Origin: Takakia lepidozioides
Taxonomy: Eukaryota > Plantae > Bryophyta
NCBI GenBank assembly: GCA_030704615.1
Contig: CM060734.1
Coordinates: 57,660,001-57,724,000, forward strand
Length of the DNA: 64,000 bases
Direction: 5' to 3'
Shown here: positions 95-58,809 of the stretch, piece by piece
Position numbering within the stretch: the first letter of the stretch is position 1
How the letters are laid out: the number at the start of each line of letters is the position of its first letter
Translations under genes and position numbers: made by a program
Notes under the pieces: generated by a model
Told to the model about the DNA's origin: nothing
Seen by the model: only the letters and a program-made list of their open reading frames with translations
Databases searched by the model: none

Positions 95-2110
95 TCACCA
101 GTAATCCCCACAAGAACAAATCCCATCTTCAAAGTGGTGAAAGCGGTTAGCGTCCCGTAAAACAATTGCTCGGCCAACAATCTTTGAGATGAATTTGGTG
201 GAGGTGTGGCAGTCACCACACACTCGAAGATTCTTAATCAGACGGAGAGGCGTCCTAGGGGTCGTGCTGATCAGCCCAAAACCAATGGCCAGCTTCTCAC
301 TGTGGTGGCAAAGAGAAATTTCCTTTTCCTCCTCCCCGACATCATGCAATACAAAGCGCGTGTCAGGCACATACCCCGCCTCCTTCATCTGCCCAGACAA
401 TCTTCTCAGCTCAGCATGGATTTCCTTAATTCTGGGATGCAACTTGTCATCTCCAACGAAGGTGTGCACCCTGTTGCCAACCTCAATGCAGCAGCGACCT
501 GGCTCCTTTCTAACCCCTCTGACCTTCATCATTCTTCTCACCTTTGCAGTATCATCCCACCTGCCAGCTGCAGCATAGATGTTTGACAGCAACACATAAG
601 TCGCCGCATCCTGTTCATCCCACTTGAGGATAGATGTTGCCGCACGTTCAGCAATCTCCACATTGCCATGGATTCTGCAGGCACCAAGCAAGGCCTTCCA
701 CACCACAACATCTGGATTGATTGGCATCTTATTGATCAGATCCACTGCCTCATCCAGTTGTCCCGCACGTCCAAGAAGGTCCACCATACAGCCAAAGTGC
801 TTTACTGTTGGAGTGACACCATGATCTTGACTCAGGGAATCAAAGTAGCGTCTTCCTTCATTCAGAAGGCCAGTGTGGCTGCATGCAGAGAGAACACATA
901 TAAAGGTGACACTGTCCGGCTTCAGACCGTTCTTTTGCATTCCTTCAAATAGTTGCAGGACATCCCTATGACAACCATGCTGTGCATATCCTGCAATCAT
1001 CGCACTCCACGACACGAAATCTCGTTCAGCCATACTGCCGAACACTCCCTTCGCATCCTCCATGCATCCACATTTGGCATACATGTCCACCAGGGCATTG
1101 TTCAGAATGACATCGGGTACAATTCCAGCTCTGACGATGTCACCATGGACCTCTTTGCCCTTTTCCAGAGCTGCCAGGCTTGCACACGCATTGCAAATGC
1201 ACACAAACGTGATGTGGTTGGGCTTCACCCCTTCCCCCATCATTGTCTCATAGGTCTCCAAAGCCTCTGCCCCGCGTCCCTGCTGTGCATACCCTGCAAT
1301 CATCGCGTTCCACGACACCACATTTCGTTCAGCCATATTGTTGAACACTGCCTTCGCATCCTTAATGCACCCACATTTGGCATACATGTCCACAAGGGCA
1401 GTGTTCAGAAAGACATTTGGTACAATTCCAGCTTTGACGATGTCACCATGGACCTCTTTACCCTTTTCCAGGGCTCCCAGGCTTGCACACGCATTGCAAA
1501 CACAAACAAACGTGATCTGGTTGGGCTTCACCCCTTCGCGCGTCATTTGCTCATAGGTCTCCAAAGCATTCGTACCACACCCATGCTTGGTAAATCCTGC
1601 CAACATTATATTCCACGTGATCAAAGATCGTTCAGGCATTCTGTTGAACACTTGGTGAGCATCCATGATGCTCCCGCACTTAACATACATGTTGACAAGG
1701 GTGTTCAGTAGGAAAACATTTGGCGTGAATCCACTTTGGATAATGTGAGTGTGCACCTGCTTTCCAGCTTCCAGGCCTTTCATCTTGATGCACTTATGCA
1801 AGAGACAGACATACGTATCTGAATCTGCTGAAGTGCCTCCTTGGTTTAAAGTCTGTAGAGCCTCTTTCAGTCTGCCTGCCTCACAAAGCATCTTCACATG
1901 CCCAGAAGTGCCAGAAGAGGCATTGTGGACTCCCTCTTTTGATCCTCTTCCAGAAGCTGTGGTCATGGTTGAGGTGCCTGATTTTATCAACTGTGCCGCT
2001 ACAGCTGCTGCCTTTAGTTGACCATCTACCCATGCAGGTTTCTTGTAGCTATCGATCCACAGGGAATCATAGGTAATCTTGTGCTTGAAATCCAGCCCTC
2101 TTGGATGAAT
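95..2110 (-). CDS. Terminal exon: PLS-class PPR with DYW cytidine deaminase domain (organellar C-to-U editing factor type)
   Basis: ORF 95..2122: L-S-P triplets, P2-L2-S2, E1, E2, HSEK and CxxC zinc ligands, ending GDYW. AG acceptor at 2111-2112. Confidence 0.97.
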   Translation of the reverse strand: MHPRGLDFKHKITYDSLWIDSYKKPAWVDGQLKAAAVAAQLIKSGTSTMTTASGRGSKEGVHNASSGTSGHVKMLCEAGRLKEALQTLNQGGTSADSDTYVCLLHKCIKMKGLEAGKQVHTHIIQSGFTPNVFLLNTLVNMYVKCGSIMDAHQVFNRMPERSLITWNIMLAGFTKHGCGTNALETYEQMTREGVKPNQITFVCVCNACASLGALEKGKEVHGDIVKAGIVPNVFLNTALVDMYAKCGCIKDAKAVFNNMAERNVVSWNAMIAGYAQQGRGAEALETYETMMGEGVKPNHITFVCICNACASLAALEKGKEVHGDIVRAGIVPDVILNNALVDMYAKCGCMEDAKGVFGSMAERDFVSWSAMIAGYAQHGCHRDVLQLFEGMQKNGLKPDSVTFICVLSACSHTGLLNEGRRYFDSLSQDHGVTPTVKHFGCMVDLLGRAGQLDEAVDLINKMPINPDVVVWKALLGACRIHGNVEIAERAATSILKWDEQDAATYVLLSNIYAAAGRWDDTAKVRRMMKVRGVRKEPGRCCIEVGNRVHTFVGDDKLHPRIKEIHAELRRLSGQMKEAGYVPDTRFVLHDVGEEEKEISLCHHSEKLAIGFGLISTTPRTPLRLIKNLRVCGDCHTSTKFISKIVGRAIVLRDANRFHHFEDGICSCGDYW

Positions 2111-4090
2111 CTGGACCCACACCCTATCCCTGCTCCTTCAGCTATCCATGCCTCTGCACAAATCATGCATTCATCCTTGCCTTGCTGCTAGCAGCTGACA
2201 ATAACAGCCTAGATTTGTTCTAGGAAACACCCAACTCAGCTTATCACACTAGTTCCTATGCTGAATTGCGTCTGCTACTCTCTGTAATCTAACAGGCATT
2301 CACCTTTTTGCCTCGGTGGTCCCACCATTGACTGGGGTCAGAAAAGTATTCATTCCACAGCTTCTCCTCATCTCTGTTACCTGTTTTTGGATACTTTCCT
2401 GCGGTCACATTGGCAGTATCATGTCAAAGTCGCTCCAAATTAGATTCACTCAACCAGCTAACTTGCAGAATTCAACATGGAAATTTAGGGCCGATTCTGA
2501 TAAGAGGGAACAACAGGGTGAAATGTGTTGAAGAAGGTGCCTTCATTAGCAGTGCCTGATTTTATCAATTGTGCCACTGCTGCTGCGGCTGCCAGTTGAC
2601 CATCTACCCATGCAGGTTTCTTGTAGCTATCCGTCCACAGGGAATCATAGGTAATCTTGAGCTTGAAATCCAGCCCTCTTGGATGAATCTGGACCCAAAC
2701 TCTATCCCTGCTCCTTCAGCTATCCATGCTCTGCACAAATCATGCATACATCCTTGCCTTGCTGCTAGCAGCTCACAATGACAGCCTAGATTTGTTCTAG
2801 CAAACACTGCAATCCTACTTATCACACTAGTTCCTATGCTGACTTGCGCTTCCAACAGGCATTCACCTTTTTGCCTCGATTGTTCCACCCTTGACTGCGG
2901 TCGGAAACATATTCATTCCAGAGCTTCTCCTTGTCTCCGTTATCTGTTTTTCGATACTTTCCTGTTGCCTCAATGGCAGTGACATGTCAAAATCACTCCA
3001 AAACCACCATAGATCTACTAACGAGCTAACTTGCAGAATTCAACCTGAAAATTTAGGGACGACTCTGATAACAAGGGAAAAACAGGCTGAAATGTGTTGA
3101 AGAAGGTGCCTTCATTAGCAGTGCCTGCTTCTATCAATTGTGCTGCTGCCGCTGCTGTTTCCAGTTGACCATCTACCCACGCAGGTTTCTTGTAGCTATT
3201 GATCCACAGGGAATCAGAAGTAATTTTGTGTTTGAAATCCGGCCCTCTTGGATGAATCTGGACCTCTATCCCTAGACCTTCAGCTATCCCTGCATGTGTA
3301 CAAATCAGGAATACATCTTCAGCCATGCTGCTAGCAGCTGACACTAACCGCGTGAAGTTCTTCCAGCAAACACCCGAACCCTACTTATTACAGTAGTTCC
3401 AATTCTGAATTGCATCTGCTTCTCTCTGTAATCCAACCGGCATTCACCTTTTTGTCTCCATTGTCCCACCATTGACTGGGGTCGGAAAAGTGTTCATTCC
3501 AAAGCTTCTCCTCATCTCTGTTATCTGTTTTTGGATACTTTCCTGCTGCCACATGGGCAGTAACTTGTCAAAGTCACTCCAAACCACAACAGATCCACCC
3601 AACGAGCTAACTTGCAGAATTCAATATGCAAATTCAGGGCCGAGTCTGATGAGAGGGCAAAACAGGCTGAAATAGGTCGAAGAAGAAGGTGCCCTCACCA
3701 CATTGTCCTTCACCTTGTATCACGACCCAGGGAGGATTTGACCGACCATCAACCCAAAAGGACCTCTTGTGTGTGTTGATTGTGTCTGTAGTCAGGTAAT
3801 CTCGGACTGGTCTGTGAGAACCACCACGGTGCAGCTGAGCAGGCAGAGATTGAAACACGGCCTGCTAAGACCAAGCTGACTCTCCCAAGAACCTTGCAAA
3901 CATCAGGAAGAATACCAAATCATGGTACTAACAGGAGCCAAGAGCCCACATTTGCAGGATGGACAAACTTCTTCACATCGTACGTTAGGAAAAAGCCACA
4001 CCTTGCGATTGCGGTTGTCCCACCATCGGGAAGGATCTTCAAGAAACTCGTGCCAGCTCTGCTCCGTGCTCCAAGGTAGAGGTTTGTGCT
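95..4090 (-). CDS. Multi-exon PDF-motif + PLS-PPR-E1-E2-DYW protein. Predicted exons: ~4090-4002 (5' limit uncertain), 3834 or 3811-3693, 3542-3448, 3257-3110, 2961-2867, 2688-2541, 2398-2304, 2110-95
   Basis: The terminal exon has 11 PLS repeats, E1/E2, a PG box (KEPG), HSEKLA, CGDCH and a C-terminal DYW. The upstream exons encode LWNExFSDPSQWWDxRxKK|IHPRG(P/L)DFKHKITxDSLWIxSYKKPAWVDGQL, matching the OSB PDF motif. Splice sites are phase-compatible from 3542 downward. The 5'-most part shows apparent frameshifts. Confidence 0.85.
1974..3692. repeat. Tandem triplication of a ~575-bp unit (about 1974-2551, 2552-3120, 3121-3692); each unit is two exons plus two introns
   Basis: Each unit starts gtgcctg...atcaa and contains gaagaaggtgcc. 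Exon lengths are invariant while intron lengths vary. Confidence 0.95.
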
Positions 4091-4419
4091 CGAAAATCCG
4101 ACAGCATCAACATTTTGACAAGGTCCTTTACTGAGGTGTGCTAGTGAGCTTTCAACAACATTCATGCAAGTTGTTTTGGGCTCCATTGGGCTCCACACGA
4201 TGAGGAACAACGAACATGTCCAGACTTACACAGATGCTAACGCAGCTTATGTTTGCAGTCTGGAGATTGTAGAGTGGCCTCTGAAAACGACCAGGGAGGA
4301 AGGCGCTGAGCAGCCAGAGTCTTCTAGCCTGGGTCTTGGCATTTAAGTTTTTCTCACGTTCTATTGTTCGTTGAGTGGGGGTGTTGGAAATCAACTCCTT
4401 ACCAGTCTACGTGTTGGAG

Positions 4420-4641
4420 AACCCAACAAGCGACATCGCAGGAACAATAAGTGAGAACACTTTGGAGGGCGATACTGACCAAGGAGATGGTCTGGCAGTA
4501 ACAGTGACGAGCAGAAAATGCAGTAACACCCAGTAATCCATAACTAGAATGAAGGACTAGCAGAAGCCCCTGTAACCCTAACCCTAATAAGGAGAAGGAA
4601 CGAGTCTTCTTGGGTGCAGGGCTCTTCCTCCCCTTTCTCTT
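4420..4641. repeat. ~220-bp segment (probable promoter/5' leader of the PDF-PPR gene, with aaccctaa telo-box), duplicated at ~12985-13220
   Basis: Shared gagaacactttggagggc...aatccataactagaatgaagga...ataaggagaaggaacgagtctt in both copies. Confidence 0.9.
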
Positions 4642-4644
4642 AAA

Positions 4645-6870
4645 TTTTTTTTTTTTTTTTTTTTTTTCGCAAGACGGACTCTGGCCTCGGAAACTTTATA
4701 TCAGAGGGGACAAAATGCCCAGGGGAATACAGGAGGAAAAAATAACCTCACTAAAGGGTGCCATAGAGGCTGACCCAGGAAGGCAACTGCTTCGTCACCA
4801 AGACCTTAGTAGACACGAAAGACAGGGAGGTGCAAGGATGTCCAGCCTGCTACGTGAAAGAGAGCTGAGCAGTTTAATAACTATCACGCTTTCTCTTGTA
4901 GGTTTGAAAGGAGAGCTGCGTTCTAGATCTAGTCTTCCTAAGTGGTCCGCAGCGATGTCTCCAATTCACTTCAGATTCTTCCCCATCAACCGGGGAGGGG
5001 AGAGCACTATAGGAGCTCCCAGATCGCAGGGATGGAGTCGTTCCAGCGAACTCCCGAGGATGGGTCTCTAGTGCAGATGATCTCTCCCTTGCCCCACGAT
5101 TCGTCAAACTTAGAGAGTAGTTGGTCCCCTCGCCTGCTGCTACACCTGCTAACAGCTTCCCTCAACACCCGCCAAGCCTTGCGGGCCTCAGACATCAAGT
5201 CTGAGTGAACCAGACACAAAATGACTCTCACGGTACTCGGTCTCCCATCAAAGAATCGCTTGCATCTCGCTTTCCAGATGTGCCACAAGGTTAGAGCTCT
5301 GAGAGCAGCCCAAACCGGGCACTGAGACCACAATCCTCCCTGAGAATAATTAAGAAGCAGAATGGAATCACAAGGCAAGACCAGCAACTTCCACTGCCAG
5401 TAGAAGGCACAAACATGAAGCCAAACCGCGTTGGCCAGAGGGCAGGAAACCAGGCAGTGGTCAATGGTTTCGGCAGCCTGCAAATTACAATGCCCACACT
5501 CCATAGAGCCATCCTGAAAATGAGCACGGACAGGGAGAATCCTGTTGACTAATTTCCACAAGAATCCAGCAATCTTAGAAGCCCTATCCTTACGCCAGAC
5601 ATCCTTCCAAACTGTAGTCCAAGAAGAAGGGCAGTCAGGAAGGTGTGCCCATTTGGACGACCATTTAGGGTCCATGAAGATGTCTGGCTTGAGAAGGCCT
5701 ACCCCTAACTTAACTGAATAATTGAAAAAGGGAGAAAGCTTCCTGTCCTTCCATACCCACTCTCCTGGGTCAAATTGGAGGAGCGTGATGGGGGCCTGAA
5801 GAAACCAGTGGAGGAAAAGGGTTAGTGTGCGCACCATTTTCCACCGATGGGCTTGTCTTCCCTGAAGCCATACAAAAAACACGTATGGCATAGCATTGGG
5901 GTTCAGGCAGCTCGCCAAGGGAAGGGGAGAAGAGGGAGCCAGAGGATGTAACACAATACTTCCATCCTAATAGCAAGGAGTCTGATCTAGCCACTGCAAA
6001 GAAAGCCGTTTTGCCCTCAGCTGAATCACATCCCACCCAAGCAGGCAACGTTCTAAGATTCACAGGGAATGAAGCCAGGGAGATCCATGATGGTGGGATG
6101 CTACCCGTCACCAGATCCCAGCCCGCCCGAGCTCTCCTGCAAGACAGGTGGGTCGTGGCCTCAGATCTGGCTAGCAACGAACCATTTTCCCAGATGTGCG
6201 AAAAGTGGGTGATGTTGGCAGCCTCCCAAGGGGCCCAACGACTAGAACACTTTGCCAGAATGGTGCAGTCTCTACCATGATTGCCGAAAAGAGGTTGTCT
6301 GGACACCTCTTCTGGGGTGGAAGGGCTCAACTGGCTGAGATGGGGACGAAGTCTGGTCCAGGCTGCCCATATAGATCTCCAAGGCAGAGATCCCACTTTT
6401 GTCTTAGAATTCAGAGACCCGCCTTGCACCACCCACTTAAGAGAGAGCGGCCATAAGTGCGAGGAAGAGGGGATGGCTCGGAGAATATGTTGCCTGACCA
6501 AAAAGCACCAAGGAGCATTCAGATTACTAAAGATCCGCGGAATCCATTTCGCGAGTAGAGCACATATCTGTGTATCTGGATCGAGGATCTCGAGGCCACC
6601 AAACCTTTTCTTTTGAGAGATCTGCGCCCAGCTGACCAGAGCCCGTCGGGTTGGTCTAGATGTTGTAGCACCCCAAATAAAGTTCCGAATAAGGGATTTT
6701 ATCTTCCTGATAACAACTGCTCCAGGAGACCACACCGAGGAGATGAACCTGCACGAAGCCAGGTGCATGGAGCTCCAGTAGGCCAGCTGCTTTTTAAGGT
6801 AAGCAAGAATGGAGTCGCTTCTTTGAGAGTCATCCAAATCATGGCCAACGTGATGCCCCAGAAGCACATG
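4645..6870 (-). mobile_element. 5'-truncated, frameshifted L1/Tx1-like LINE (ORF2 C-terminus with zf-RVT) with poly(A) tail
   Basis: KKRFGGLEILDP, FLWKLVNRILPV, CGHC..ETIDHCLVSC, TLWHIWKARC. Poly-T at 4645-4667 on the + strand. Confidence 0.92.
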
Positions 6871-6959: not shown

Positions 6960-9900
6960 AAAGTTTTCAAAGTTATTAACTTTACCTTCAATCCCCGCGA
7001 AACTGTTATTGCTGTGGAAAATCAGGGCACCGCAAGGCACAATGCCCGCAAGCCAAGAGGAACACAAAGCTCAACAATCATGCCGAGCCTGGAAGATCAT
7101 CACTTATTTAAAAGTCTGCTTCTGCCACTATTCGCCCCCATCAAATTCCCCTCAACCATCGACACAACTCCTTCATTCACCCTATCCCTCTGCAGGATGC
7201 TAGCCTGCATCCGGTCCAAGATCATTCCTATCAGCAATGGTATTCAGCGGTCAACCAGATTTCAACCTCCCCACCTGCTAAGAAAAGGAGACAAATCATC
7301 GACCCCATGATTGTGGAAGCTACCTCAGCATCGGCTTCTAAAGCACGGAAGGGCTTGGGATCACTCAACCCAAAATTCGAGGCGGCAAGTATCCAGGGCT
7401 CATCATATCAAACATTCTCAAAGCACATCTTCCAGCATCCCTTCCAGAGGCACCCACCCCCCTTCCAATACCCCAAATTATCTCTTGGGAATTAGAACAG
7501 GCAAAAGGCAAAGGGAAGGTATGCCCCAACATCCACATCAGGCCTCCAGTCGACCCGGCTCCAGCACAGCTTCCCCGTCCCTCCCCGGTGGCACACAACC
7601 CAACGATAGCGAAAATCTATGCTACTCTTGACTCCTTCCCTAACCTACCTGGCAGGTTGCTCATAGCTCACATCTAAAGGGGAGCCGGTTGCCACTTGCC
7701 TTACCCCATTGATCTTCAGAAGGAAGCCCAATCTGGCATTTCTTGTCACCGCTAGGGACAACATGAGCTTTGACTCTATTTGGATCTCACTGCACGACAT
7801 TCAATCCTTCCTATCCAAATGCCCTATGGACAGTTCCCCCATTCCCACCTTATGCAACAAAATTCATGCTTATCTCAAAAACAACCTCCCTCTCTACTCT
7901 CTTCTCCCTCACTCTTCGGTCACTTGGGGCTCTTACATAGAGGCCTTCCCTAGCTTGCGTCAGGACCTTTCTCCCAACACCAATATCTTGGCTCTAATGG
8001 ACGAGGATCTCCTAAGTTCCAGCGGTAACACTCTTCCAGAAGTCTGGGCTGAGCCTGATCACTTTGACGGTCCCTGCATCCCAAGCAAGGCCTTGACCAG
8101 AGCCAAAGACACCCTAGGCAATGCGTTCACTGTTCTCAATGCCCTCTTGGATTTGGAGTTTGAAGACCAGAATGACGAGATCGAATGAAGGCGCATTGAA
8201 GACTTCAACAAGCCTTCTTACGACCCCAAAGGCTCTTTGTCAACCTCCAGCTCCTCCGAACTGCAGATCTCACAATTCTTCACGCAGCATTCGCCGGTGG
8301 ATTCACAACAACCCTCAAAGCCCTACCTCCAGGTGTTGTGCTGCCTTCCCCGACACCTGCGTGGCCTTGTAAGTCCCCTACTGCCCTCTCAGTCCATTCC
8401 TCTCCTTTGTTTCTCTGCTTGGAAAGTACTGCCCTCGATCACCTACCCCCCGCCCCCACACCTGCTCTCCAAAATCCTGCAATCTGGTTCCACACCGCTT
8501 CCCTCTCCTGTATCGTTCAAAACCTCCCTCCAAAGCTCACTCAGGTTCATCCCCCTCGACAATGCAGGAAATCCCCTTACGAATCGAACTAGCACCCTAG
8601 TCCTATTTGTTAACATCATTCACCCCATCCCGCCCGATCCTCCAGGCCTCTCCTGGTGTCTTTCCCTCATCCCCTCGGACAAGATAACAAGGTTCCGCTT
8701 CCTACCATCCAGGCCATCATTTGAGTCTCAACCCCTTAGCCTGTCTCCATCCCTCGATGCAGGTTAGCATGTCTTCCTGGAATATCAGAGGCCTGGGCTC
8801 TAACCAAATGGCCCTGAAAAAAGTCAAGCTCTCGGCTTGGCTAGCCCCCCTCATCCCCTCTCAAGCAATAGTTTTTCTCCAAGAGCACAAGCTATGTCAC
8901 CGCAAAATCCTTAAGCTCACTAATCAATTATGGCCTAAGTCCTCAGCTCTCTGGAAACCTTCTTTGGAAGGGACGCGGGGCGGGACGGCCATCCTCCTCT
9001 CCCCATCCCTCTTCCAGGTTCCTAATCAAAGATGAGATTTGGGAAACCGGGAGAGCCCAATTCTGCTCCCTCCAGTTTCCCAATAGCACATAACCCATAG
9101 GCTTTATTAACATTTATGCTTCCAATGACTCTCTCGAAAGAGCTGCTCTCTGGAACAAGTTAACCATTCTCATGTCAAACCAATCAGACATCAGTAAATG
9201 GGTGATTGCAGGCGACTTCAATATGGTAGAGAATGAAAGGGACAGACTCGGTAGAGGTTCCAATCGCCTCAACCCGGAGGAGGAACTTTCATGGCTCACT
9301 CTAACCCAGACACACAGCCTCACCGAAATGGAAGGACCTCCCAACGACCCAGCTGGCTCCAATCCCTTCTTTACCTGGACAAACAACAGAGATTTCACTG
9401 ATCTTAGCATGGCCAGACTTGATAGATTCTACGCCTCTATTTCTCTATCCCATGTTGCCTTCTTAGACCCGCAGGACCCTATCCCCCTAGGTTTCGATCA
9501 CGCCCTCATCTCAGCTTCTCTTAAACTGCCTTTCTCCCATCCCAGAGGAGAAGGGATCTTCAGACTCAACTCTTCCCACCTCCGGTTATCCTCATTTACC
9601 GATGCTCTAAAGTCTGCCCGGCTATTAGCTGCAAATGACATCCCTTGTCATATTCAAAGATTCCAAGCCAAGCTAGCTGCCATTTGCAAAGTAAGTCAAG
9701 AGCTCAGTCGAGATTTGGCCGCTGCAAAGAAAAGGAAAACTCTGGCTCTCAAAAAGTGCCTCAAAAGAAGCTGGCCCTCCGGTTTCTGCGATGCCCACAC
9801 CTACCAATTCACCTACCTAGAAGCTCGGCACAACATGGATATCCACCTTATTCTTCAGGAACAAAAAATCAAGATGCAAGCGGGGATCAACTGGTCATCC

Positions 9901-11610
9901 AATGGAGAGAAAATGACCAAATACTTCTTCCAGAAGTTGAAGCTCCGTAGAGCAAGCCAGGCCATTTCGCAGCTTTACGCAGACATCCCAGGGGTCGCAT
10001 CATCCAACCCCAAACAGATGGGAGCCTCAACCTTCAACCACTTTGCTTCCTTGTGCCAGGCAGATCCTAGAGACGCTCTCTACCCTGTCAGGCTTGAGGA
10101 AATGCCTTCAAACTATCCCCACATCTATGCGACCAGCAGACTCGGCAAGTTTGGAGGAAGAACTCACCCTGAGGAGCTTCATATCGCCCTCAAAGCCATG
10201 AACAACAACGAAGCTCCTGGCATTGATGGGATGCCAGTGGAATTTTACAAATCCTTGTGGTCAACCATCGTCAAGGACTTTTCTGATATGGCAAACGCCA
10301 TCAAGGCCCAAGGCTTCATGCCTGCAGCAATGAATAAGGGGGTGATCACCCTGCTCTTCAAAAAAGAAGATAGAGCTAACCTCAACAACTATAGGCCAAT
10401 CACCCTTCTTAACGTGGCATATAAAATTATAGCTAAGGCCCTAGCCATCCGCATCCAACCCCTTCTCCCTTCAATGATTAGATCAGGTCAGGCAGGCTAC
10501 GTCAAAGGAAGATACATCCTCGACAATGTCCTGTTAGCTCAAGAAGCTAACATCTACGCATGCAAAACAGGGCAGTCATTGGCCCTCTGGCTCCTAGACT
10601 TCGAGAAAGCATTTGACAAAGTCGACTGGTCCTTCCTTATGGCCGTGCTCCACAAATCAGGCATCCCTCATGGCTTCTGCCAGTGGGTTCAGATTTTGCT
10701 GCAAGGGGCAACCAGCAGAGTCATGGTTGATGGGTATCTCTCCAAACCCTTCCCGCTCCAAAGGTCAGTAAGGCAGGGCTGCCCTCTGGCACCTTTTCTC
10801 TTCTTGTTTGTGGCAGACGCTCTCAGGCACATGTTATACAGCAACCCTCAGGTGAAAGGCCTAAAGCTTGAGACCCTAAGAACCAACACATGGAAGGAAG
10901 TCAAGGACTCAATGTTCATTGATGACACCTTCTTACTTCTCCAAGCCAACAACCCCTCGCTAGAAACCGCACAAGCCACGCTCAACCACTTCTGTAGTGT
11001 CTCTGGGTTCAGAATCAATTGGTCCAAAACCAAAGCCTTGTTACTAGGGGACCGCTCAAAATCTGACATTGGGACAGCTCCCACCTGGGGACAGCATTTG
11101 GGCCTGCATTGGCTTAAAGAAGGGGAGCCTACCACACTATTAGGGCACACATTTGGCATCAATCTCACTGAAGTACAAAGGATGGAGCCCACAATTCAAA
11201 AGATGAAGCGCCACCTGGCCTACTGGGGGTCGTGTCATCTATCTATCACAGGAAGAGCACTGGTAGCCAACCAGATTATTCTGGCAAGTATTTGGTGATT
11301 TGTTTCAACCTGGGGCCCTCAATCAAAATTCCTCAAGGAAATCAAAAAGTTGATTAGGAACTTTATCTGGGAAGCTGCTTCCTCCTCCCAAAACAAGATA
11401 CCTCAGGTGTCCTAGGCCCAAATCTGCCTGCCAAAAAGATGGGGGCTTAGGTGTACTTGACCCAGCTACGTAGATCAAGGCTCTCCTAGGAAAATGGATT
11501 CCTAGATTCAATGGGCCGGACGGAGGCTGCTGGAAGCTAATGGTCTCCACCACAATATCCTCCTCCACTCCTCTGCAACGTGTGCAATGGCCTGCCTCAA
11601 ACCGCTGGCT
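6960..11610 (+). mobile_element. Degenerate L1/Tx1-like LINE: probable ORF1 remnants, then ORF2 (APE endonuclease + reverse transcriptase), 3'-truncated
   Basis: SWNIRGL and FLQEHK (8770-8890), GDFN, RLDRFY, APGIDG, NYRPITLLN, DFEKAFD, VRQGCPLAP and a mutated FIDD catalytic motif. Stops/frameshifts near 9035 and 11298. The 5' boundary is approximate. Confidence 0.93.
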
Positions 11611-18057: not shown

Positions 18058-20865
18058 CTACCATGGCTTGAGGTCTTCAGGGGGACCTTCGGTCCAATTT
18101 AGCACAGCTTGCCCCGGCTCTAAATAGACGCCACTGTCATGTGGCAGCTTGCGTGCCAAGCCATTCAATATTTGGTGGAAAGCATCCCCTGGTTGTGCAG
18201 GCTGCGGGAATAGCATCGCTTGTTTCATTGCCGGGTTCGCCAACAGCCTTTGCTTTTCAAGGACTTGCTCCGGGGTAATTGAAGACAAGATTTGGTCAAG
18301 ATGCGGGACATCTTTCTCAGCTACAAAAATCCCAATTTTCTCCCAGGGTATAGCATCAGCAAATGGAAGGACAATATCGTCGGCAATAATGACAGGGATA
18401 CACCCAAAAATCACACCTTCAACCAACCGGGGACTCCATGGTGCCCAGCCCAACGGGCAGAGGCAAAAGATTGCACGCTGCATGTCCTCATAATATGTGG
18501 TTGGGTGCTCTGTGGAGATGTCAAACAGTGGGTTGTCCTTGAAATTTTCCCACAGAGCTGCCCTGGCTCCCCTGAAAAGTCCAAAACGTCCAACAATAGT
18601 TAGTAGCCTAAATACTCTGCCTTTCAAGGCATGCCAGCTGCTGCGACTGCTCGTAAAATACTTTTGCAACAACATCCCCATCCAGTCATTCCCCTTTAGG
18701 AGATTTAAAATGTTGTTCGAAGAGGGTAGCCCATGGTGATACTACAAAAGGCACTTGCTAAACACATCCCTGGCACAGCCATTACAGCACACTAGTGCAA
18801 TGCAAACACCAATCATGAGGCTTCGGTAATAACAGACATACCGGGCATAATAACCACCTTTTGGATCATTGCCAACATCGTAGAAAAGGCCACGGAAGTA
18901 TACAAAAATGGAGCGTGGGACACTTGGAGGAATAAACCGGGATTGCATTTTCTGAGGTGGGGCATAAGGAGGAACCACAATGGAGCCCTCCTTGAGACAC
19001 ACATGGTAGCTCTGACCAAATGTTTGCACGAGCGTTGCACGCATCAGCAGTGGTAATATACCCCTCTCAATTGCAGTCTCTTCCTGTGTAGCCACACAGT
19101 TTACAAAGGACTTACAATATGGACTCAAGAAGATCAATTACATATTTGCTCTGCCTTTGGGCTTAGCGAGAAATTAATTTCATGCTTGCAAACCTACCCA
19201 AATCACAAGGTCAAACATCTAGCCTAAGATTATTTTTCACCCCATTCATAGAATCCGAGATATTGACCTTTTTCCAAAGTACCTGATAGTGGAAGCAGGC
19301 ACCAAAGTCATGGGGCACAACGAAGAAGTGGTCTGCACCCTCTGTCCGGTTCCAGTAGGGCCACTGTCTTGAAATATATTGAATGGCACTACGCATCATA
19401 CGGGGGGACTTGAAAGGCAGAGGAAGCCCATTGGGAGTCAAATCACAGGTGGTGTAAACTGGCGTGTAGAACCAGTCAGCCTCTTCAGGGTTCAAAGTGC
19501 GGACTGGACTTGCGAGTAAGAATTCGTGGACAAAAATCTCAGTGGCAAACATGTGGGTGAGGCAGCGAGGGTCCTTCTCCACCCATTTCCTGTTATACCT
19601 CCTGAGATACAAACAACATAAAACCTTCAGTTACAATCAAGGCACTAAGGTGAGGCAGGATCTAGACTGCATCATGAATGCATTGAGGTGAGGCTGAAGA
19701 CTAAAAAATGAAACTGATGTAGAGCTTATCTGTGTAGCTTGACTACATTTTAAGAGAATCAACATTCTGTGGTTTGAACATTAAAATCTGCACCTATGTT
19801 GTGGGATTGCACGGGCAGCATTCATGAACCTCTCATGAAGGTGACCTATTGCTGCACAGGAATACTCATAGACATTGTACAAACAGGATAATCCCAAGAC
19901 AGTTTAATCTCTTGTGGAGCCTCTGATAATGGAAGTATGCAGGTGCTTCTCTGCCCACAACAACGTAGCCAGACAGGCAGAATCACGCCTAATATGTCAA
20001 GACAAAAACACTCCATGCAATGCAAAACGTGGAAAGCTGAGATGATGATTCATTTCATAGGAAACTCAGACGCAATTGTCTGACTAAAAGCTTTGGCCAA
20101 CGTCTTAAAGACTGCCCCTACTTGGGAATTTCATAAACGAAGACTTTGAGGCGGCCTACTGGATCATCCTCCAGCACATCGCCTGCACTCCCTGCACAGA
20201 TATCCAACCATTACAAATCAACAGTTGCTTTAGCACAGGACTTTTGAAAGTAATGGTTCAGATTAAACTTATTCAGTTCAGTCCTTGGGGTATGAGTTTG
20301 AAGGATTTTGTGACGTCAGAAAAAATATGCACAACTCGTTAACAACCTGAGCACTTGACAAGTGAAGCATGTCTACGAGGTGCACAAGGGATATGGTAGC
20401 CCAGACCTTCTTCTTGACTATTATCCTGCACAACCTTGCCCAAATGCAGTATATAATATTGCACAACAGAAGGTCTTTTAGTCCACCACATGCATGGTCC
20501 AGATGGATCTTAGCTACCAAGTACAGCCACTGCGGGATCTAGAGGTTTATTGGTTATGAGAGTTGAGACAGGAGCGAGCCCGACGTTGTTCGCTGGACGG
20601 CGGCCAACCGGCCACAACAATGAATGTAAGAACTTTAGACATAATGACAGCTGGATGCCATGCTGTGAGATTGTCTGACACTGTGACCTACAGAAGAGTC
20701 ATGGACACTACATACTCCTTCAAGCTGAGAGAGCATGCAACAAAATAAAAATTGAAGTTGGAGGAGAGAGATACCAGAGATTCGCTGATGCTGGACTGAG
20801 GCGATGGACGTCTTGCACAATAGCAGTAAAAGAAACCAAATACTCGTCAATCGTACGCCCTGCAT
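18058..20865 (-). CDS. IRX10: GT47/exostosin xylan synthase, IRX10/GUT1-like. Exons 20865-20775, 20191-20122, 19601-19283, 19083-18842, 18571-18058
   Basis: Signal anchor, GSAGDVLEDDPVGRLKVFVYE, DPRCLTHMFA, FCLCPLGWAPWSPRLVE and C-terminal DLKPW. All GT-AG junctions are in phase. Confidence 0.95.
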
Positions 20866-24413: not shown

Positions 24414-24754
24414 CTGCAAGCATCGCACTCCACGATATCACATCTCATTCAGCCATAGTGTTGAACACTCCTTTACATCCTCGATGCACCCACATTTGGC
24501 ATACATGTCCACCAGGGCAGTATTCCACAGCTTGTCCTCATCTCTGTTACATGTTTTTGGATACTTTCCTGTTGTCTCATTGGCAGTATCATGTCAAAGT
24601 CACTCCAAACTATCAAAGGTTCACTCAACCAGCTAACTTGCAGAAGTCAACATAAAAATTTAGGGCTGTAAAACAGGGTGAAACGTGTTGAAGAAGGTGC
24701 CTTTATTAGCAGTGCATATCAATTGTGCCGGTGCTGCTGCGGCTTCCAGTTGAC
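24414..24754 (-). pseudogene. Internally deleted fragment of a PDF-PPR paralogue
   Basis: Matches the repeat unit at ~2350-2600, joined directly to an S-type PPR (KLWN|TALVDMYAKCGCIED). Confidence 0.88.
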
Positions 24755-27595: not shown

Positions 27596-27953
27596 AAACA
27601 GGCTGGAATAAGTCAAAGAAGAAGGTGCCCTCACCACATTGTCCTCGACCTTGTGTCATGACCCATGGAGGATTTGACTGACCATGAACCCAAGAGGACC
27701 TCTTGTGTGTGCTGTTGTGTCTGTAGTCAGGCAATGTCGGATTGGTTTGTGAGAACCATCACGATGCAGTTGAGTGGGCAGAGATTGAGACACGGCCTGC
27801 TAAGACCAAGCTGACTCTCCGAAGAACCTTGTAAACATCAGGAAGAATGCCAAATGATGGTACTAACAGGAGCCAACAGCCCACATTTGCACTATGGACA
27901 AACTTCTTCACATCGTATTGAGAAAAAGCCACACCTTGCGATTGCGGTTGTCC
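27596..27953 (-). pseudogene. Copy of the first PDF exon pair region (matches 3659-4020)
   Basis: Clearly alignable by eye. Encodes DNRNRK|TNPTLPDYRHNSTHKRSSWVHGQSNPPWV. Confidence 0.92.
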
Positions 27954-28040
27954 ATCGTGAAGGTGACCAGCCACTTCCCATAGTAGTCGATGGCCACATC
28001 GTGCACCACATCTTCATGCCCCGATTCTAGGGTTTGAGTC
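27954..28040 (-). pseudogene. N-terminal fragment of SEC13
   Basis: QTLESGHEDVVHDVAIDYYGKWLVT resembles the SEC13 N-terminus (ETGHxDxVHDVxMDYYGKRLAT). Confidence 0.85.
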
Positions 28041-29361: not shown

Positions 29362-29681
29362 CAATGATAAAGAAATGAATGATACACGCACACAAGCTCT
29401 CTCAAACTCACATACTTGCACATGAAAACATCACTCATATATTAAGTCGAGCCAAGTGCACCCCACGCCATGGGGAATCCACACTACGGCGCCATAGCTA
29501 GACGCGGTGAGGCTCAACTCGATAAAGATGAGCCCACCGCGATCTGTCGTGAAGATAACAACGCCAGGTGTCAAAACATGTATTGGCCTCTAGATTGACA
29601 CTTGGGTCAATCCCAAATGTCAATATATAAAAGCTAGCTATTTCCTAGCTAATTTCACACTAGTGGTAAAATAACTTGACA

Positions 29682-31420
29682 ATGGCAGCCTAGATTTGTT
29701 CCAGCAAACACCCTAACCCTACTTATCACACTGATTCATATGTTGACTTGCGCTTCCAACAGGCCTTCACGTTTTATGCACCACAGAGCTAACTTGCAGA
29801 ATTCAACCTGAAAATTTAGGGACGACTCTGATAACAGGGAAAACAGGCTGAAATGTGTTGAAGAAGGTGCTCATAGGTCTCCAAAGCCTCAAACACGCGC
29901 CCTTGTTGTGCATATCCTGCAGTCATCGCACTCCACGACACCACATCTCGTTCAGCCATACTATTGAACACTCCCTTTGCATCCTCAATGCACCCACATT
30001 TTGCATACATGTCCACGAGAGTACTGTACAGAATGACATCGGGTACAATTCCAGCTCTGACAAGTTACCATGGATCTCTTTGCCCTTTTCTGCGCAGGCT
30101 TGCACATGCATTGCAAATGCCATCAAACGTGATGTGGTCGGGCTTCACCCCTTCCGCTATCATTTGATCATAGGTCTCCAAAGCCTCCTTCCCGCGGCCT
30201 TGCTGTGCATACCCCAATGTCCAAAATTAAGGACTGAAAGATTGTGCACACAATTATCACATTTTACCAGTTCATTTTCATGCACTCCATAATAATATGT
30301 GCATCTTGTTGTGATCTAGAGTCTTATACTGCCTTTTCCATAGTAAAGTCTTGGACTTTAATCAGCAATCAACAGAAATGCCTCCATAGCTAACTACGCA
30401 AACCTGAGTCAAGTTAACTCCAACAATTGTGCAACGGCCCCTGGCAGCGTGATGTCCTACTACACTTGTGCTCAATGGATTGTAATTGACGTTGATTTAG
30501 GTCCAGCTACTGGTTACGGAGACTGTGTTGAACTGGTGGATTCATCATATTGTGAATTCGAGTCTAAAATTGCCAGAGTGTATTGTAGATTAGCATTTTA
30601 TAGTCATTATCGTACTATACAGTCACATTTTCTACCTCCCGAACTGAACATAAGTGATCTCACTGTGATTATTCACCTCACAAAAATCTCTCATCCCTCA
30701 CAAAAGTGTTGGTTAACTATCTTGATTATGTCAAAAGAAGAAAAGCATAGTGTTCCACGACAACACATCTCGTTCAACCATACTGTTGAAAACTCCCTTC
30801 GCATCCTCGATGCACCCACATTTTGCTTACATGTCCACCAGTGTATTGTTCAGAATGATGTCGGGTACAATTCCAGCTCTGATGATGTCACCTTTGCCCT
30901 TTTCCAGGGTTGACAGGCTCGCACACGCATTGCATATACAAACGAACGTGACCGGGTCTGGCTTTACCCCTTCCCGTATCGTTTGCTCATAGGTCTCCAA
31001 TGCCTCCATCCCGCATCCATGCTGGGGATTATCTCGCGATCATCACACTCCAGGACACGACATTTCGTTCAGCCATATTCTCAAACACTCCATTTGTATC
31101 CTCAATACTGCCACATTTGGCATACATGTCCCCGAGGGTATTGTCCAGAATGACATCGGGTACAATTCCAAATTTGACAATGGCACCATGTACCTTTTAC
31201 CCTTTTCCAGGGCTGCCAGGCCCGCTCACGCATTGCAAACACAACCCGGTCCGGCTTCACCCCTTCCCATATTATTTGTTCATAGGTCTCCGAAGCCTCT
31301 ATACCACGCCCCTGATGTGCATATCCTCGCCCTTCCTCCATCATTTGCTCAAGAATAGGTCTGAAAGCCTCTATCCCACGCCCCTGTATTGCATATCATG
31401 CGATCATGGCGTTCCATGAC
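29682..31420 (-). pseudogene. Scrambled PDF-PPR paralogue fragments: intron pieces (29682-29870), PPR repeats (29871-30213 and 30751-31420), and a ~540-bp unrelated insert
   Basis: DMYAKCGCIEDAKGVFNSMAERDVVSWSAM and EALETYEQTIREGVKPD closely match the 95-2110 exon. Many frameshifts. Confidence 0.88.
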
Positions 31421-35194: not shown

Positions 35195-38052
35195 ATGGCC
35201 TGCTCAATATGCACTCATAGATGCAACAAACTTCATGGAAAGACACCACGTTGGCGTCCGAGTTTTGTCAAGAGCGTGACAACTGACTCCGATATGTTCG
35301 TGAGTTGGAAGAACAAAGATGGCGAATCCCAGGTAATTTACTTTAATTTGCGAGGACATATTGAACTAATAAGGTGGAGAAAGTATATCCATTTTACGTG
35401 TACAACATAGGAAATCATACTAGGGAGAAAGTTGAGCACCTATTTGAGTGGAAAGTGTCTACCGTTGTTAGCGTCGTGTTTGTAAGGCTTGACTGATTAC
35501 ATAAATAGTCTAGAACACTGTACATGGAGTTCTTCTTGTAGTCGACACTACAACCATTTCAACCATTGCATTGGATGCCGCAACCCTCTCAGAAAACGGT
35601 ACTTGAAACCTTGATGGTTGCAGATCTTCAATGTTTAGCACTTGTAAGAAATTAGAATCACCGCTTACTGATGGGTTTCTTCCTGGACAACGCATTGGTG
35701 TAGAGGTTTCCACACAAAATTTTCCCATCAGTAATGGTCTTAGTTTCAGATGGCCAGGGTAGCTCGTTATGTCAAAACTCACAAAAGTTGTGATATCACA
35801 ACAACAATTGATTGTTGATTGCATCTGCCAAAGCAAACCTTGATTTCATTTATCCAGCATTAGACTTGAAATTTCTCAAAGTGGTGCCTTCGGAAGATCC
35901 TCCTTCTTTTATCTTATCTCTCGAGCTATCCCAAACTTAGTGTGGGCCATTTGTTGCAGTGGATACCCCCCGAGTTTTTGAAGCAGAACAAGGGCAGAAT
36001 ATTACACATCGTGAGTTTGGAAGGACCAAGCTCCCGCGTGTGGGAAGTGGTGGCTCTAGGTGATTTAAGCTTCAGCACCTCAGGATTGCGAGAATTTGCC
36101 TCGGAGCATGGCCTGGAAGCAGGGGACAACGTTGTGTTTACTCTCATTGCAGACTCCTACTTCATTGTGCAAATATACAACAAACATGGGTGCGAAAAAC
36201 AATGCAATGTTGTCATTTCCAGCACTCAACCTTGTCGCCCTCAAGCACCAAGGTACTTGGTGCTTAGGCAAGTTGGTTACAAAACGATCATAAGAGTGGA
36301 TAGCAGGAGAGATGCACCAATTCAACTCCCACTCTAAGCTTAATCTAAATGAAAATGCATGACCTCAGATCACTAATTCTTATTGTGAGGTTGCACAGGT
36401 TACAAAAGGAGATAAATATGATGGGAGATGATGATACCAAAAGGGCCATTGAACAATTCACTGGGCACCTCTCGCACCTTCTAGGTTTGCATTCAAGCTT
36501 TTGTTGAAGCTTTAGGGCACTGCATGATCAAGAGCGAAATTATGTTGTTTCCCAATTGAGCAGATCCTTCTCAACAGAGACTAACCGTAGACCAAGTCAT
36601 TATATGCTCACCTCAGTCCTCATCTTCGTTTGCTAAGGCAACTACCTGCTTTCACTAGTGTTTGCCTCTTATCTAGAGTTCAAGAAGGAGAATGGAGCTA
36701 AGAACGCTGACATGAACCAAGATCCTAGTGAAGTGAGTAGTTCACGAGTGGGGAAAGAAATCAAGCAAAGACGATACAGTGAAGGTGAAGCTCTAGTGCA
36801 CACACAACAAGCTATGCACAAAAACGTTTATCACAGGCGCCATGTCAGTGCAACTCCACGTGAGATAGGCAGGGCAGCTGCAACTACCAATCCAAGAGCT
36901 GCTGTTATAATGAAGGCGTGGATGGTGAATTCATGCTTATTGCTGGTGAGTTCACCATTCTTGGCACTCCCTTTTGAACTCCTGCCTCTGCACTCTCCTC
37001 CTCATCTTAACCCACAGTGATTCTTAGTATGGACAGTGAGAGACAAGACTCTTGTCCCAGGCCTTCTCCCCCACTCAACAAATACCTCTACTCATTGAGG
37101 ATGGATAAAGACTTCCACAGGCTTTGTCATATCTGGAATCCCTTTACAGATATAGATTTGAACCAAGGCACATTGTGGTGGCCGTTTGCTACAGGCGCTA
37201 CCAAAGGATTTCACCAAGAAACACTTTCCCAAAAAGAGAGTGGTCATAACCCTCATGGACTGCAACAGGAAGTCATGGCATGTACAATGGCTTGGACACC
37301 GCAAGAGTCCATTTTTGAGTGCAGGATGGGGAAAATTTTCTAATGACCATAGCCTCCAGGTAGGAGACATATGTGAGTTTGAGGTCATTAATACCAGCAC
37401 ATTCACACTCTTGGTGCACATCCAGCAAAAATCTGAAGCAAGAGAGTCTTTGGCCCCTTTGCTCGAAGTCATCTTGCCACCAACCCCTCAAGACTTGAAA
37501 GAAGCACACCCACCTAGGGACATAACTGGCTGCCAACCAAGTCATGAGGAAACTCATGGGACTGGAAGCGATGCCCATATAGCTGCTGATCAACTCTGCC
37601 AACTGTCAAGGAAGAGATCAGCATTGCCATTGGAAGCCTCAGAAAGCAGTCTTACCCCGCATCTAGATAAGACCAAGAGGAAGCTGATAAGCCACAGTGA
37701 AATGATTCATGTCGATGAACCTCAAGGTTGCCAGAAGGAAGCAATTTTGCTAAATACAGGAACACATGCAAATGTTGGGCTCCTCCAGGGATCCGATCCG
37801 GAGGAGAACGGAAATCACATGCAATATTACAAAGTGTCACGGGTCATAAATCGCAATATACATTCTGTTGAGAAAGAATATCTTGTGGAGCTGGAGCCAT
37901 TACAACTGAACAGACAGGAAGGCGGGTCCACGGAAGATGGCAAAGAGCTCTGGTGGGTACCCGTCAGTCATTCCTCTTATGATTTGAGTGCTGCAACATC
38001 GATTGACTCTTTTCAGTCATTGTTAGAAAATGGGTTAGTGGGGCACAGGTAG
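35195..38052 (+). CDS. REM-family protein with two B3 domains and a C-terminal chromo-like segment. Exons 35195-35299, 35960-36252, 36399-36484, 36677-36945, 37195-38052
   Basis: B3-1: SFVK..WIPPEF..LEGPSSRVW..GLREFASEHGLEAGDNVVF. B3-2: LPKDF..LMDCNRKSW..AGWGKFSNDHSLQVGDICEF. N-terminal CxxCxxxC. Splice phases are consistent. Confidence 0.88.
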
Positions 38053-43778: not shown

Positions 43779-46700
43779 ATGGATGATTTTGAGAGAGCCA
43801 TTTTTTTCAGTTTTGACCAAAGTGGGGCAGTAGACGCACAGCTGAAGGCCCAGGCGATGGCCTACTGTGAGCATGCGAAGCAGACTCCTAACATTTGGCA
43901 AGTATCCCTGGACAAGTTTCGCCTTTCCCAATACGCCGAGGTACAATTCTGGTGCCTTCAAACTCTGGAAGAAGTAATGCGGCAGCGTTATATGAGTCTG
44001 GATCCGCAGGAACGCTTGTTCATTCGGTCGTCACTGATGGCAGCCTTTCGCAACTTTGACCTGGACGATCAGTCGTCCCAGTCGCCAGATCCTGGAAATG
44101 CTACCCTAACTAGACCTGCATTTGTGAAAAACAAATTGGCGCAACTCATTGTTATTCTCATCTATATTGAGTATCCTGCGGAGTGGCCTTCGGTTTTCGG
44201 AGATATGCTGGGCGTCCTTAACAAGGGACCAGCAGTGGTCGATATGTTCATTCGAGTATTGAATACATTGGATGAAGAGGTCATAAGCTTGGACTTTCCA
44301 CGAACTGCAGAGGAGACTGCCACCGCAACACGAATTAAAGATGTGATGAGGCAGCAATGCATTTCACAGGTTGTGGGAGCTTGGTACAGTCTGATTGTCA
44401 TGTATAAAGCCCAAAGCCCACACCTTGCCACTGCTGTGCTGGAGATGATGCTCAAGTATGTGGCATGGATTGATATTGGTCTGGTGGCCAATGAAAGTTT
44501 CGTTCATCTGCTCTTTGAATTCCTGGTTTCCCCTCATGAATATCCTCGTCTTCGCGGAGCAGCTGCTGATTGCTTGCTGGCGATTGTGTCCAAGAGAATG
44601 GAAGCTCCTTCAAAGCTTGCTCTTTTGGAGCGGCTTCGGATTGGCCAGGCCTGTAGCCACATCATGGAGGCTCAGGAACCTGAGTTTGCTCTGAAGCTCA
44701 CCAGTCTGCTCACTGGAATTGCAACAGAGGTTTTGGAATGTAGCAAAAAGATAGATCTTGGTACATCCTCAGGCCAATCTCTTGCGATGATAGAAGCAGT
44801 GTCTGCCATGTTAGATGAGGTCCTTCCTCCTGTGTTCTATTTTATGCGGCATGGTGATGAAGACATGTCGACAACAACCTTTCAGTTTCTGAATAATTAT
44901 GTAGCAAGGATGAAGAGCTTTAGTCCTCTGAATGGCAAACAGGCCATTCACATTGGACAGATATTGGAAGTTATTTACAGTCGCATGCGCTTTGATTCGG
45001 AAAGTCAGGAGTCATTGGATGAACCGGACAAGGATGGGCAGGAAGAAGAGGAGAGGATGGCAGACTACCGCAAAGATTTATTGTCATTGTTCAGGAGCGT
45101 AAATCGAGTAGCACCTGATGTGACCAGAACATTTGTTCAAAGCAGTCTTGCCTTATGTTTAGGGAAGCCGGACTCAGTATTTGAAGACGTTGAGGCGGTG
45201 ATTGTGCTCCTTCATGTACTTGGAGAGGGAGTGACAGAGGAAGCTTTGAAGCCTGGTGGAGGATCTCTGGAGGAGATGGTTGGAGCATTATTGTCCACAA
45301 ACATACCTCACCATTCGCATCGATTAGTGGCACTCATTTATCTAGAGACGGTTACTAGATATGTTCGGTTTGTGCAGCAGCATGCTGAATACATACCTTC
45401 AGTGCTAGCAGCCTTTTTGGATTCCAGGGGCATACACCATCCAAACCCCAATGTAAGCACTAGAGCAAGCTACCTCTTTATGCGCCTGGTGAAGGTGCTG
45501 CGCATCCAGTTGGTTCCATACTTGGAAAACATTCTTCAGGTATACGTAGCTTTCCGTGTAGACTTCAGTGCGTTCAGCTCATGATAAAGGCTAAGAATCT
45601 TCTGTAGAAGGTTGTAGACTGATTCATTCTGTGGATCTCCTCTCAGAGCCTGCAAGACACATTGTCGGCATTTGCAACCGGCAAACGAAGCATGGGGAAG
45701 GCAGATCTTGATGATCGAAGTTATGCTTTTGAGGTGATTGTCAGCTCCATCTTTTGGTGAATGGGAAGGAAGAACAAGGGACAAAAGTGTTTATAGCTCT
45801 TTCAAGAAACTCTGGAGCAGTATAATTGTTGAACGTCTCTATTGCTTTACTTCTGCCTTCCTTCCTTGGAGTCAATCTACAATTGGCATGTGTGTGCAGG
45901 CAGTTGGCTTGTTGATTGGCATGGAGGAGCTGTCAGTTGATAAGCAGGCAAAGTTTGTTTCTGCACTTCTGGTGCCTCTTTGTGGGCAGGTAATCCTATT
46001 TCCTTCCAGTATGGTACGGTAGAATTCTTTGGCTCTACATCTTTGTTAAAGGATGGTATCTCGGCTGCTAAAGGTGGAGCTTCAAGGAAGCAGGGTTTAG
46101 GGTTTTTGAGGTAGGTCCCAGGTTTCTCCTGCTAGCACGCCTTGACTTTGGGCTTGACTTGTGAAGTAGACTTAGTAATCTCAGATTCTTGTCCAAAGCC
46201 GTGTACAATGTGTGGACTCACTTTGATTACATTTTGTTATACTCCTTCCTAAGAGAAATCATAGAGGCGGATTTGGTGGAATGCAGGTGGAGGCCATCCT
46301 GGCAAATGAATCTGTGAAAGGTGACCTAGTGGGGCCTGCAGCAACTGTGGCTGCTCTGCAGCAAGTTATATTGGCTATCAGTTACTTGAGCAAGGTTAGT
46401 GTCAAGCTCGGCCTGACCTCATCACATTTACAATCAAAATTTCAGAAGGTTAAAAAATGGTGTGCCCTGCATAAATGGCAACAAACTTAGTCTCATGTCA
46501 CCATTATTATCTGAGCAATGCCCATGCTTGTTACCGTCTACATATTTCTTCAAGGAAGTTTGCATATTTGATGCTAACCTTGGTTATTGTGCCTGAGAGT
46601 AGGATGCTGTTGGAGACTCTTCCAAGGTCAATTTCATAGGTCAAATATGTAAGCTATAGGCAATCATTGATTTATGCATGAGTTTCAAGTCGACGGGGAT

Positions 46701-58600: not shown

Positions 58601-58809
58601 ATAGTGAAAAACTGGCCATTGCTTTTGGGCTCATCAGCACACCTGCTGGGACACCTATCCATATATTCAAGAACCTTCGCATTTGTGGTGATTGCCACAC
58701 TGCCACCAAGCTCATCTCCAAGATTGTTGGGCGAGAAATTCTTGCAAGAGATGCTAGCCGCTTCCATCATTTCAAGGATGGAGCATGTTCTTGTGGGGAT
58801 TATTGGTGA
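55700..58809 (+). CDS. PLS-class PPR-E-DYW editing factor (~20 repeats). Predicted exons 55700-55731 and 55932-58809
   Basis: Long ORF with L-S-P triplets, E1/E2, HSEKLA, CGDCH and GDYW. ATG 55700 joins in phase via a CG|GTATGC donor and TGCAG acceptor; the start is inferred. Confidence 0.95.

Follow-up and report, generated by a model that had tools for sequence, protein, structure and literature searches.

OSB-type PDF motifs ahead of PPR arrays in seedless plants, and a probably decaying PDF-PPR-DYW gene in the moss Takakia lepidozioides

Introduction

Can an organellar RNA editor carry a module for binding single-stranded DNA (ssDNA), and what would such a module contribute? The question is raised by a stretch of 64,000 nucleotides from the moss Takakia lepidozioides (contig CM060734.1, positions 57,660,001 to 57,724,000 of the forward strand; hereafter the window), where a minus-strand gene places motifs resembling the PDF motif of plant OSB proteins ahead of PPR repeats and a DYW domain. 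PLS-DYW proteins carry out C-to-U editing in organellar RNA. A preliminary description, made from the letters of this DNA, had proposed three PDF units, with a fourth upstream, spliced onto 11 PLS repeats and an intact DYW domain; it had expected uncharacterised homologues and suggested either a nucleoid-tethered editor or a deaminase acting on ssDNA or R-loops. Here, we find that the fusion is almost certainly real as a family in seedless plants (mosses, lycophytes and ferns). On balance, we lean towards placing the locus in a large family of organellar PLS-PPR(-E-DYW) RNA-editing factors of seedless plants, with PDF motifs as a tether, this particular copy being in decay.

Results

When the minus-strand exons 3542–3448, 3257–3110, 2961–2867, 2688–2541, 2398–2304 and 2110–95 are joined, the resulting 2597 nt form a single open frame without any stop except the terminal one, in agreement with the splicing proposed earlier for the three units. 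Units 1 to 3 are tandem duplicates, introns included, with an identity of 85–96% between exons and 82–93% between introns. The three introns lying within units (3447–3258, 2866–2689 and 2303–2111) are all GT-AG and in phase 0. Those between units (3109–2962 and 2540–2399) are GC-AG, in phase 1, and have a poor donor (AAG/GCACCT); alternative in-frame donors for them exist at 3124/2555, 3169/2600 and 3034.

By sequence comparison, the repeated units are OSB-type PDF motifs, as had been suggested. Since Pfam has no model for this motif, a 58-residue query from a lycophyte protein (P0001:144–201) was searched among 1.84 billion proteins, giving 679 matches, the best 150 of which were examined. 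Among these, an OB fold is present in 67 of the 137 non-PPR matches, and the checked examples include a named OSB3 as well as Pfam SSB proteins. A profile was then made of 162 motifs taken solely from the OB-fold proteins. Exon by exon, all A exons (first half of the motif) align to positions 2–24 of this OSB-only profile and the intact B exons (second half) to positions 26–55, with E from 3e-15 to 2e-6; even a frameshifted piece of the upstream unit, unit 0, is matched at E 8e-5. When all six frames of the window were scanned with this profile, the seven best-placed exon halves reached E 5e-11 to 3e-3, a range otherwise entered by a paralog fragment alone, so that a chance resemblance to PDF is ruled out. 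Gene structure agrees as well: this gene, a Riccia OSB, all three motifs of a Canna OSB3 and a PDF-PPR-DYW gene of Sphagnum compactum all have an intron of phase 0 in the middle of the motif and one of phase 1 ahead of it. The AlphaFold model of a homologous PDF motif has a predicted local distance difference test score (pLDDT) of 94 and, compared with the Atlas clusters, resembles SSB/OSB proteins and three PPR/DYW clusters with template modelling (TM) scores of 0.87–0.95. The PDB holds neither a sequence nor a fold counterpart of the motif among solved structures (best Z 2.6), and a word search with a 42-residue half motif and the Atlas feature searches returned no match. Two Atlas clusters of hypothetical phage (Uroviricota) proteins also match the fold (TM 0.80 and 0.71), which hints at a possible relative of the motif in phages. 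Very long arrays occur elsewhere, with 13 motifs in a Kingdonia protein and five in a protein of the green alga Sanguina devoid of any Pfam match (P0064, P0070).

The gene resembles OSB1-4 in PDF sequence, predicted fold, tandem order, and intron positions and phases. It differs in that the PDFs of OSB1-4 are C-terminal and accompanied by an OB fold, whereas here they are N-terminal, are followed by PPRs and lack that fold (no Pfam SSB match in the exons scanned). Membership of the OSB proteins is rejected on this absence. In Arabidopsis, the PDF of OSB1 is sufficient for ssDNA binding (PMC6963530), OSB1 and OSB2 prefer ssDNA over double-stranded DNA or RNA (PMC4166229), and OSB1 restrains R-loops (PMC8330923).

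Downstream of the motifs, the large exon opens with the second half of unit 3, an Ala/Ser/Gly-rich linker and a pre-PPR helix (1823–2110, minus strand, as for all parts of the gene). The 11 PLS-type PPR repeats announced by the preliminary description follow at 710–1822; they are confirmed by a motif parse (order L-S-P-L-S-P-L-S-P2-L2-S2) and by Pfam PPR_2 (E 4e-60), and show a 303-nt tandem period. The E and E+ region occupies 377–709, and the DYW deaminase domain occupies 95–376 with its stop codon at 97–95 (Pfam DYW_deaminase E 3e-43; matches to the structures 9kfx, 7o4e and 7w86). An array closing in P2-L2-S2, E and E+, and a DYW domain with HxE, CxxC and a terminal DYW, the features of the PLS class, are thus all found. 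The last 155 residues match 9kfx, a synthetic PPR-DYW structure, at E 3e-81, with HSE, CxxC, the Zn2 ligands and the terminal DYW preserved. The domain is intact in these respects but not in its PG box, which reads PGRCC instead of the canonical PGxSW through a Trp-to-Cys change at 490–488; among the 18 relatives whose box can be scored, 17 keep this Trp. The PG-box region supplies strands one and two of the deaminase fold (PMC7611903). A U-to-C (KP-type) editor is excluded, the box being of PG type. By domain content, the gene groups with the PLS-class, DYW:PG-type C-to-U editors (OTP86, DYW1, PpPPR56/65, 9kfx), with which it has in common 11 PLS repeats, E, E+ and the DYW motifs; it departs from them by the N-terminal PDF modules on separate exons, by the replacement of SW by CC in the PG box, and, in this copy, by the lack of an intact start or transit peptide among the features found. 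A second PLS-DYW gene, intron-less and without a PDF motif, lies at 55900–58809 on the plus strand (box AGWSW).

The architecture is not private to Takakia but common among mosses, lycophytes and ferns. The database search recovered the uncharacterised homologues that had been anticipated, namely 61 non-redundant proteins with PDF motifs ahead of PLS repeats. More than 50 of them are from Diphasiastrum complanatum, the rest being from several Sphagnum species, Adiantum capillus-veneris and Logan assemblies. Each carries one to three PDF motifs, none has an OB fold, and 13 end with a DYW domain; the 48 that lack it indicate that the module travels with the PPR array and not with the deaminase. 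One intron-less Logan contig encodes three PDFs and PPRs in one open reading frame (ORF), which points to a spliced mRNA. In 51 of the 61, PDF and PPR are joined by a linker and leading helix as in this gene, while most of the other ten enter the first PPR directly, a junction type common to Sphagnum and Diphasiastrum and indicating that the module was kept across the moss–lycophyte split. Core PDF residues of the PPR-adjacent motif are 92–100% conserved among the fusions, matching the level of OSBs, which argues against pure hitch-hiking. A tree of the motifs (58 columns) is poorly resolved and needs four to six label changes, so that one and several origins are undecidable from it. The best uncharacterised relatives are 55–59% identical across the PPR-DYW part. 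Proteins of Diphasiastrum complanatum, Sphagnum spp. and Adiantum capillus-veneris have the same PDF-PPR(-E/-DYW) architecture and at most three units, and are annotated merely as hypothetical or PPR proteins; unlike in this copy, their PPR-adjacent PDF is intact. A 2026 survey of OSBs, restricted to proteins that combine OB and PDF, makes no mention of PPR (PMC13393729). As the preliminary description had supposed, no functional account of the architecture was found in the literature, nor any description of PDF-PPR fusions, although "undescribed" is provisional, since the coverage did not extend to the original OSB publication or to most subscription literature.

What state is the Takakia copy in? 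The fourth, upstream unit exists in the sense that both exon halves match the OSB-only profile, but it is not intact. Exon A of unit 0 (4002–4088; E 1e-10) has a GT donor at 4001, its acceptor and an upstream start exon being uncertain. Exon B (3714–3811) has one extra T at ~3779 relative to the paralogous fragment 27596–27963, which shifts the frame into a stop at 3751–3749, so that any transcript begun at the native 5' end has to omit this exon if it is to stay in frame. Phase would allow exon A of unit 0 to join any later B exon. Possible donors of exon B are GT 3713 and GC 3692; a duplication breakpoint may have removed an ancestral GT donor at 3713, but with respect to phase GC 3692 is just as suitable a donor. 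No Met occurs in frame before the linker, leaving the six-exon model without a start, and the best-looking upstream exon (4230–4345), an Arg/Leu/Ser-rich frame free of acidic residues that ends at a GTAAGT donor (4229), contains no in-frame ATG; the nearby ATG at 4342 is out of frame, and this exon is a candidate by inference only.

Every unit is altered at a residue that 94% or more of the motifs share. Exon A of unit 1 (3448–3542; 95 nt, phase 1 in and phase 0 out) has a Gly in place of a conserved Arg at 3459–3457, and exon B (3110–3257) keeps the PDF signature and uses the GC donor 3109 or the in-frame alternatives 3124, 3169 and 3034. Unit 2 has five changes: exon A (2867–2961) is degenerate, with P>R, W>G and D>N at conserved sites, and exon B (2541–2688), with a GC donor at 2540 or 2555, has LDF instead of PDF as well as H>L. 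In unit 3, exon A (2304–2398) matches the OSB-only profile at E 4e-11, and the signature Pro has become Leu at 2095–2093. Between units 1 and 3, the ratio of non-synonymous to synonymous differences (pN/pS) is 0.22 (p=0.002), pairs with unit 2 not being significant; this speaks against full neutrality, and the array was thus probably translated for a time after its duplication. Given the frameshifted unit 0, the missing start, the weak GC donors, the lesions in every unit and the loss of the PG-box Trp, the copy is probably decaying and yields at best shortened or exon-skipped products. That it makes the full three-unit protein is unlikely.

Contigs were available from three sequencing runs, none recorded as RNA, with 20–42% of sampled words shared. 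The 3257/3448 joint is present in contigs of the runs X1 and X2, weaker joints skip units or B exons, and 2303/2111 is not among the joints listed. The long contig pieces listed diverge by 4–9% and are mostly paralogs, and sites 160, 236, 239, 453 and 1833 carry another letter at all depth in all three runs. RNA coverage of the paralogs drops above ~4320. Transcript evidence is therefore at the family level only, the contigs coming mostly from paralogs. Rearranged PDF-PPR family fragments, 75–97% alike and with PPR pieces joined to intron pieces, lie at 24414–24754, 27596–27963 and 29677–31327 and may supply many of the contigs. Separately, a 48-nt segment (451–498) with GT-AG ends is skipped in frame in X1 and X2 contigs at the cost of part of the PG box/E+, possibly a cryptic intron in paralogs.

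Directly upstream of the gene lies a remnant of a long interspersed nuclear element (LINE; 4644–6867, minus strand; zf-RVT match, E 4e-9; poly-A tail at ~4666–4644), and a LINE ORF2-like frame is found at 9172–11298 (plus strand). Segment 12976–13220 is an 82% copy of 4412–4641, the probable 5' region of the gene, with a telo-box-like motif. By eye, the ORFs 18058–18681, 37186–38052 and 43779–45584 resemble an exostosin-type glycosyltransferase, a B3-domain protein and exportin-T, respectively, and are candidates for these.

Discussion

The intron positions and phases common to OSB and fusion genes suggest that exon shuffling carried the two-exon PDF module out of an OSB gene, a route that we infer. 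Entry and exit in phase 1 would allow the module to shuffle and duplicate without breaking the frame, and once captured, it would here have been tandemly duplicated, introns included. In working members, the PPR array would recognize one particular RNA of the organelle, and deamination of one C to U would fall to the DYW domain, either their own or recruited in E-type members. Meanwhile, the N-terminal PDFs would attach to single-stranded nucleic acid of any sequence and keep the editor in place, be it at nucleoids, on the ssDNA displaced at transcription bubbles, or on nascent RNA. Such a tether may raise the local concentration of the editor, let the PPRs meet their nascent target sooner and make editing more co-transcriptional. 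We consider this role of the PDFs an even bet.

Some observations weigh against this reading, either in its tether or in its decay part. Binding assays of PDF are confined to Arabidopsis OSBs. In one X1 contig, 157 nt are skipped, as would be expected from an in-frame GC-AG intron (2555 to 2399) separating units 2 and 3, and identity reaches at least 99% in ~1400 short X1 contigs; together, these leave room for low expression of this copy. Sites where every contig departs from the copy may in part reflect variation between alleles.

The alternative that survives best, yet is improbable, is that the PDFs came along as neutral passengers, taken up on one or a few occasions and spread by duplication and transposon capture within a fast-expanding PPR family, PPR-DYW alone being responsible for editing. 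The motif number varies from one to three and the upstream copies have often decayed, isoforms of the P0001 gene drop the PDF, family fragments are rearranged at 24.4–31.3 kb, and all units of this copy are damaged, all of which would suit a passenger. However, neither the conservation of the PPR-adjacent core in the 61 fusions at the level of OSBs nor the retention of the direct-entry junction in both Sphagnum and Diphasiastrum is expected of one.

Somewhat less probable still is a re-purposing of the PDF as a protein-interaction or capping module, which would bind editosome partners, or pack on the first PPR to stabilise the array, in plants without MORF helpers. These helpers belong to seed plants and are not known from the seedless plants concerned. 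All named fusions are from seedless plants, although this range rests on the best 150 of 679 matches, and a PDF-plus-PPR piece of the short-linker type has a predicted fold with a predicted TM score (pTM) of 0.72, from only seven sequences. In contrast, the type to which this gene belongs has a long flexible linker, and the basic and aromatic residues conserved in OSBs are kept.

That organellar ssDNA or R-loops are the substrate in which the family deaminates cytidine, the strand being presented by PDF and the sequence chosen by PPRs, is a possibility raised early on but very unlikely, as no positive evidence for it emerged: 48 of the 61 fusions lack DYW, the domain here is an ordinary PG-type C-to-U one, the literature search found no report of DYW acting on DNA, and plant organellar genomes mutate slowly. 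It draws on designer P-type PPRs that bind ssDNA with the same code (PMC12733224), on the action of OSB1 on R-loops (PMC8330923) and on the resemblance of the DYW active site to APOBEC3A (PMC7611903).

Two questions about PPR-DYW editors stay open, namely the way in which they locate their sites and a possible coupling of editing to transcription at nucleoids, and a natural fusion of an editor with a proven ssDNA-binding module makes such coupling testable by a single domain deletion. The family is the interesting object and this copy is a poor representative of it; the intact DYW-bearing members of Sphagnum compactum and Diphasiastrum are better experimental subjects. In its boldest form, put forward tentatively, seedless plants would possess an old and large class of editors tethered to organellar ssDNA by PDFs, coupling C-to-U editing to the nucleoid or transcription bubble, with some members, in the extreme case, deaminating ssDNA. 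As far as the literature found goes, the fusion would be the first case in which the PDF motif is used outside OSB proteins, and it would offer a candidate part for engineered PPR editors.

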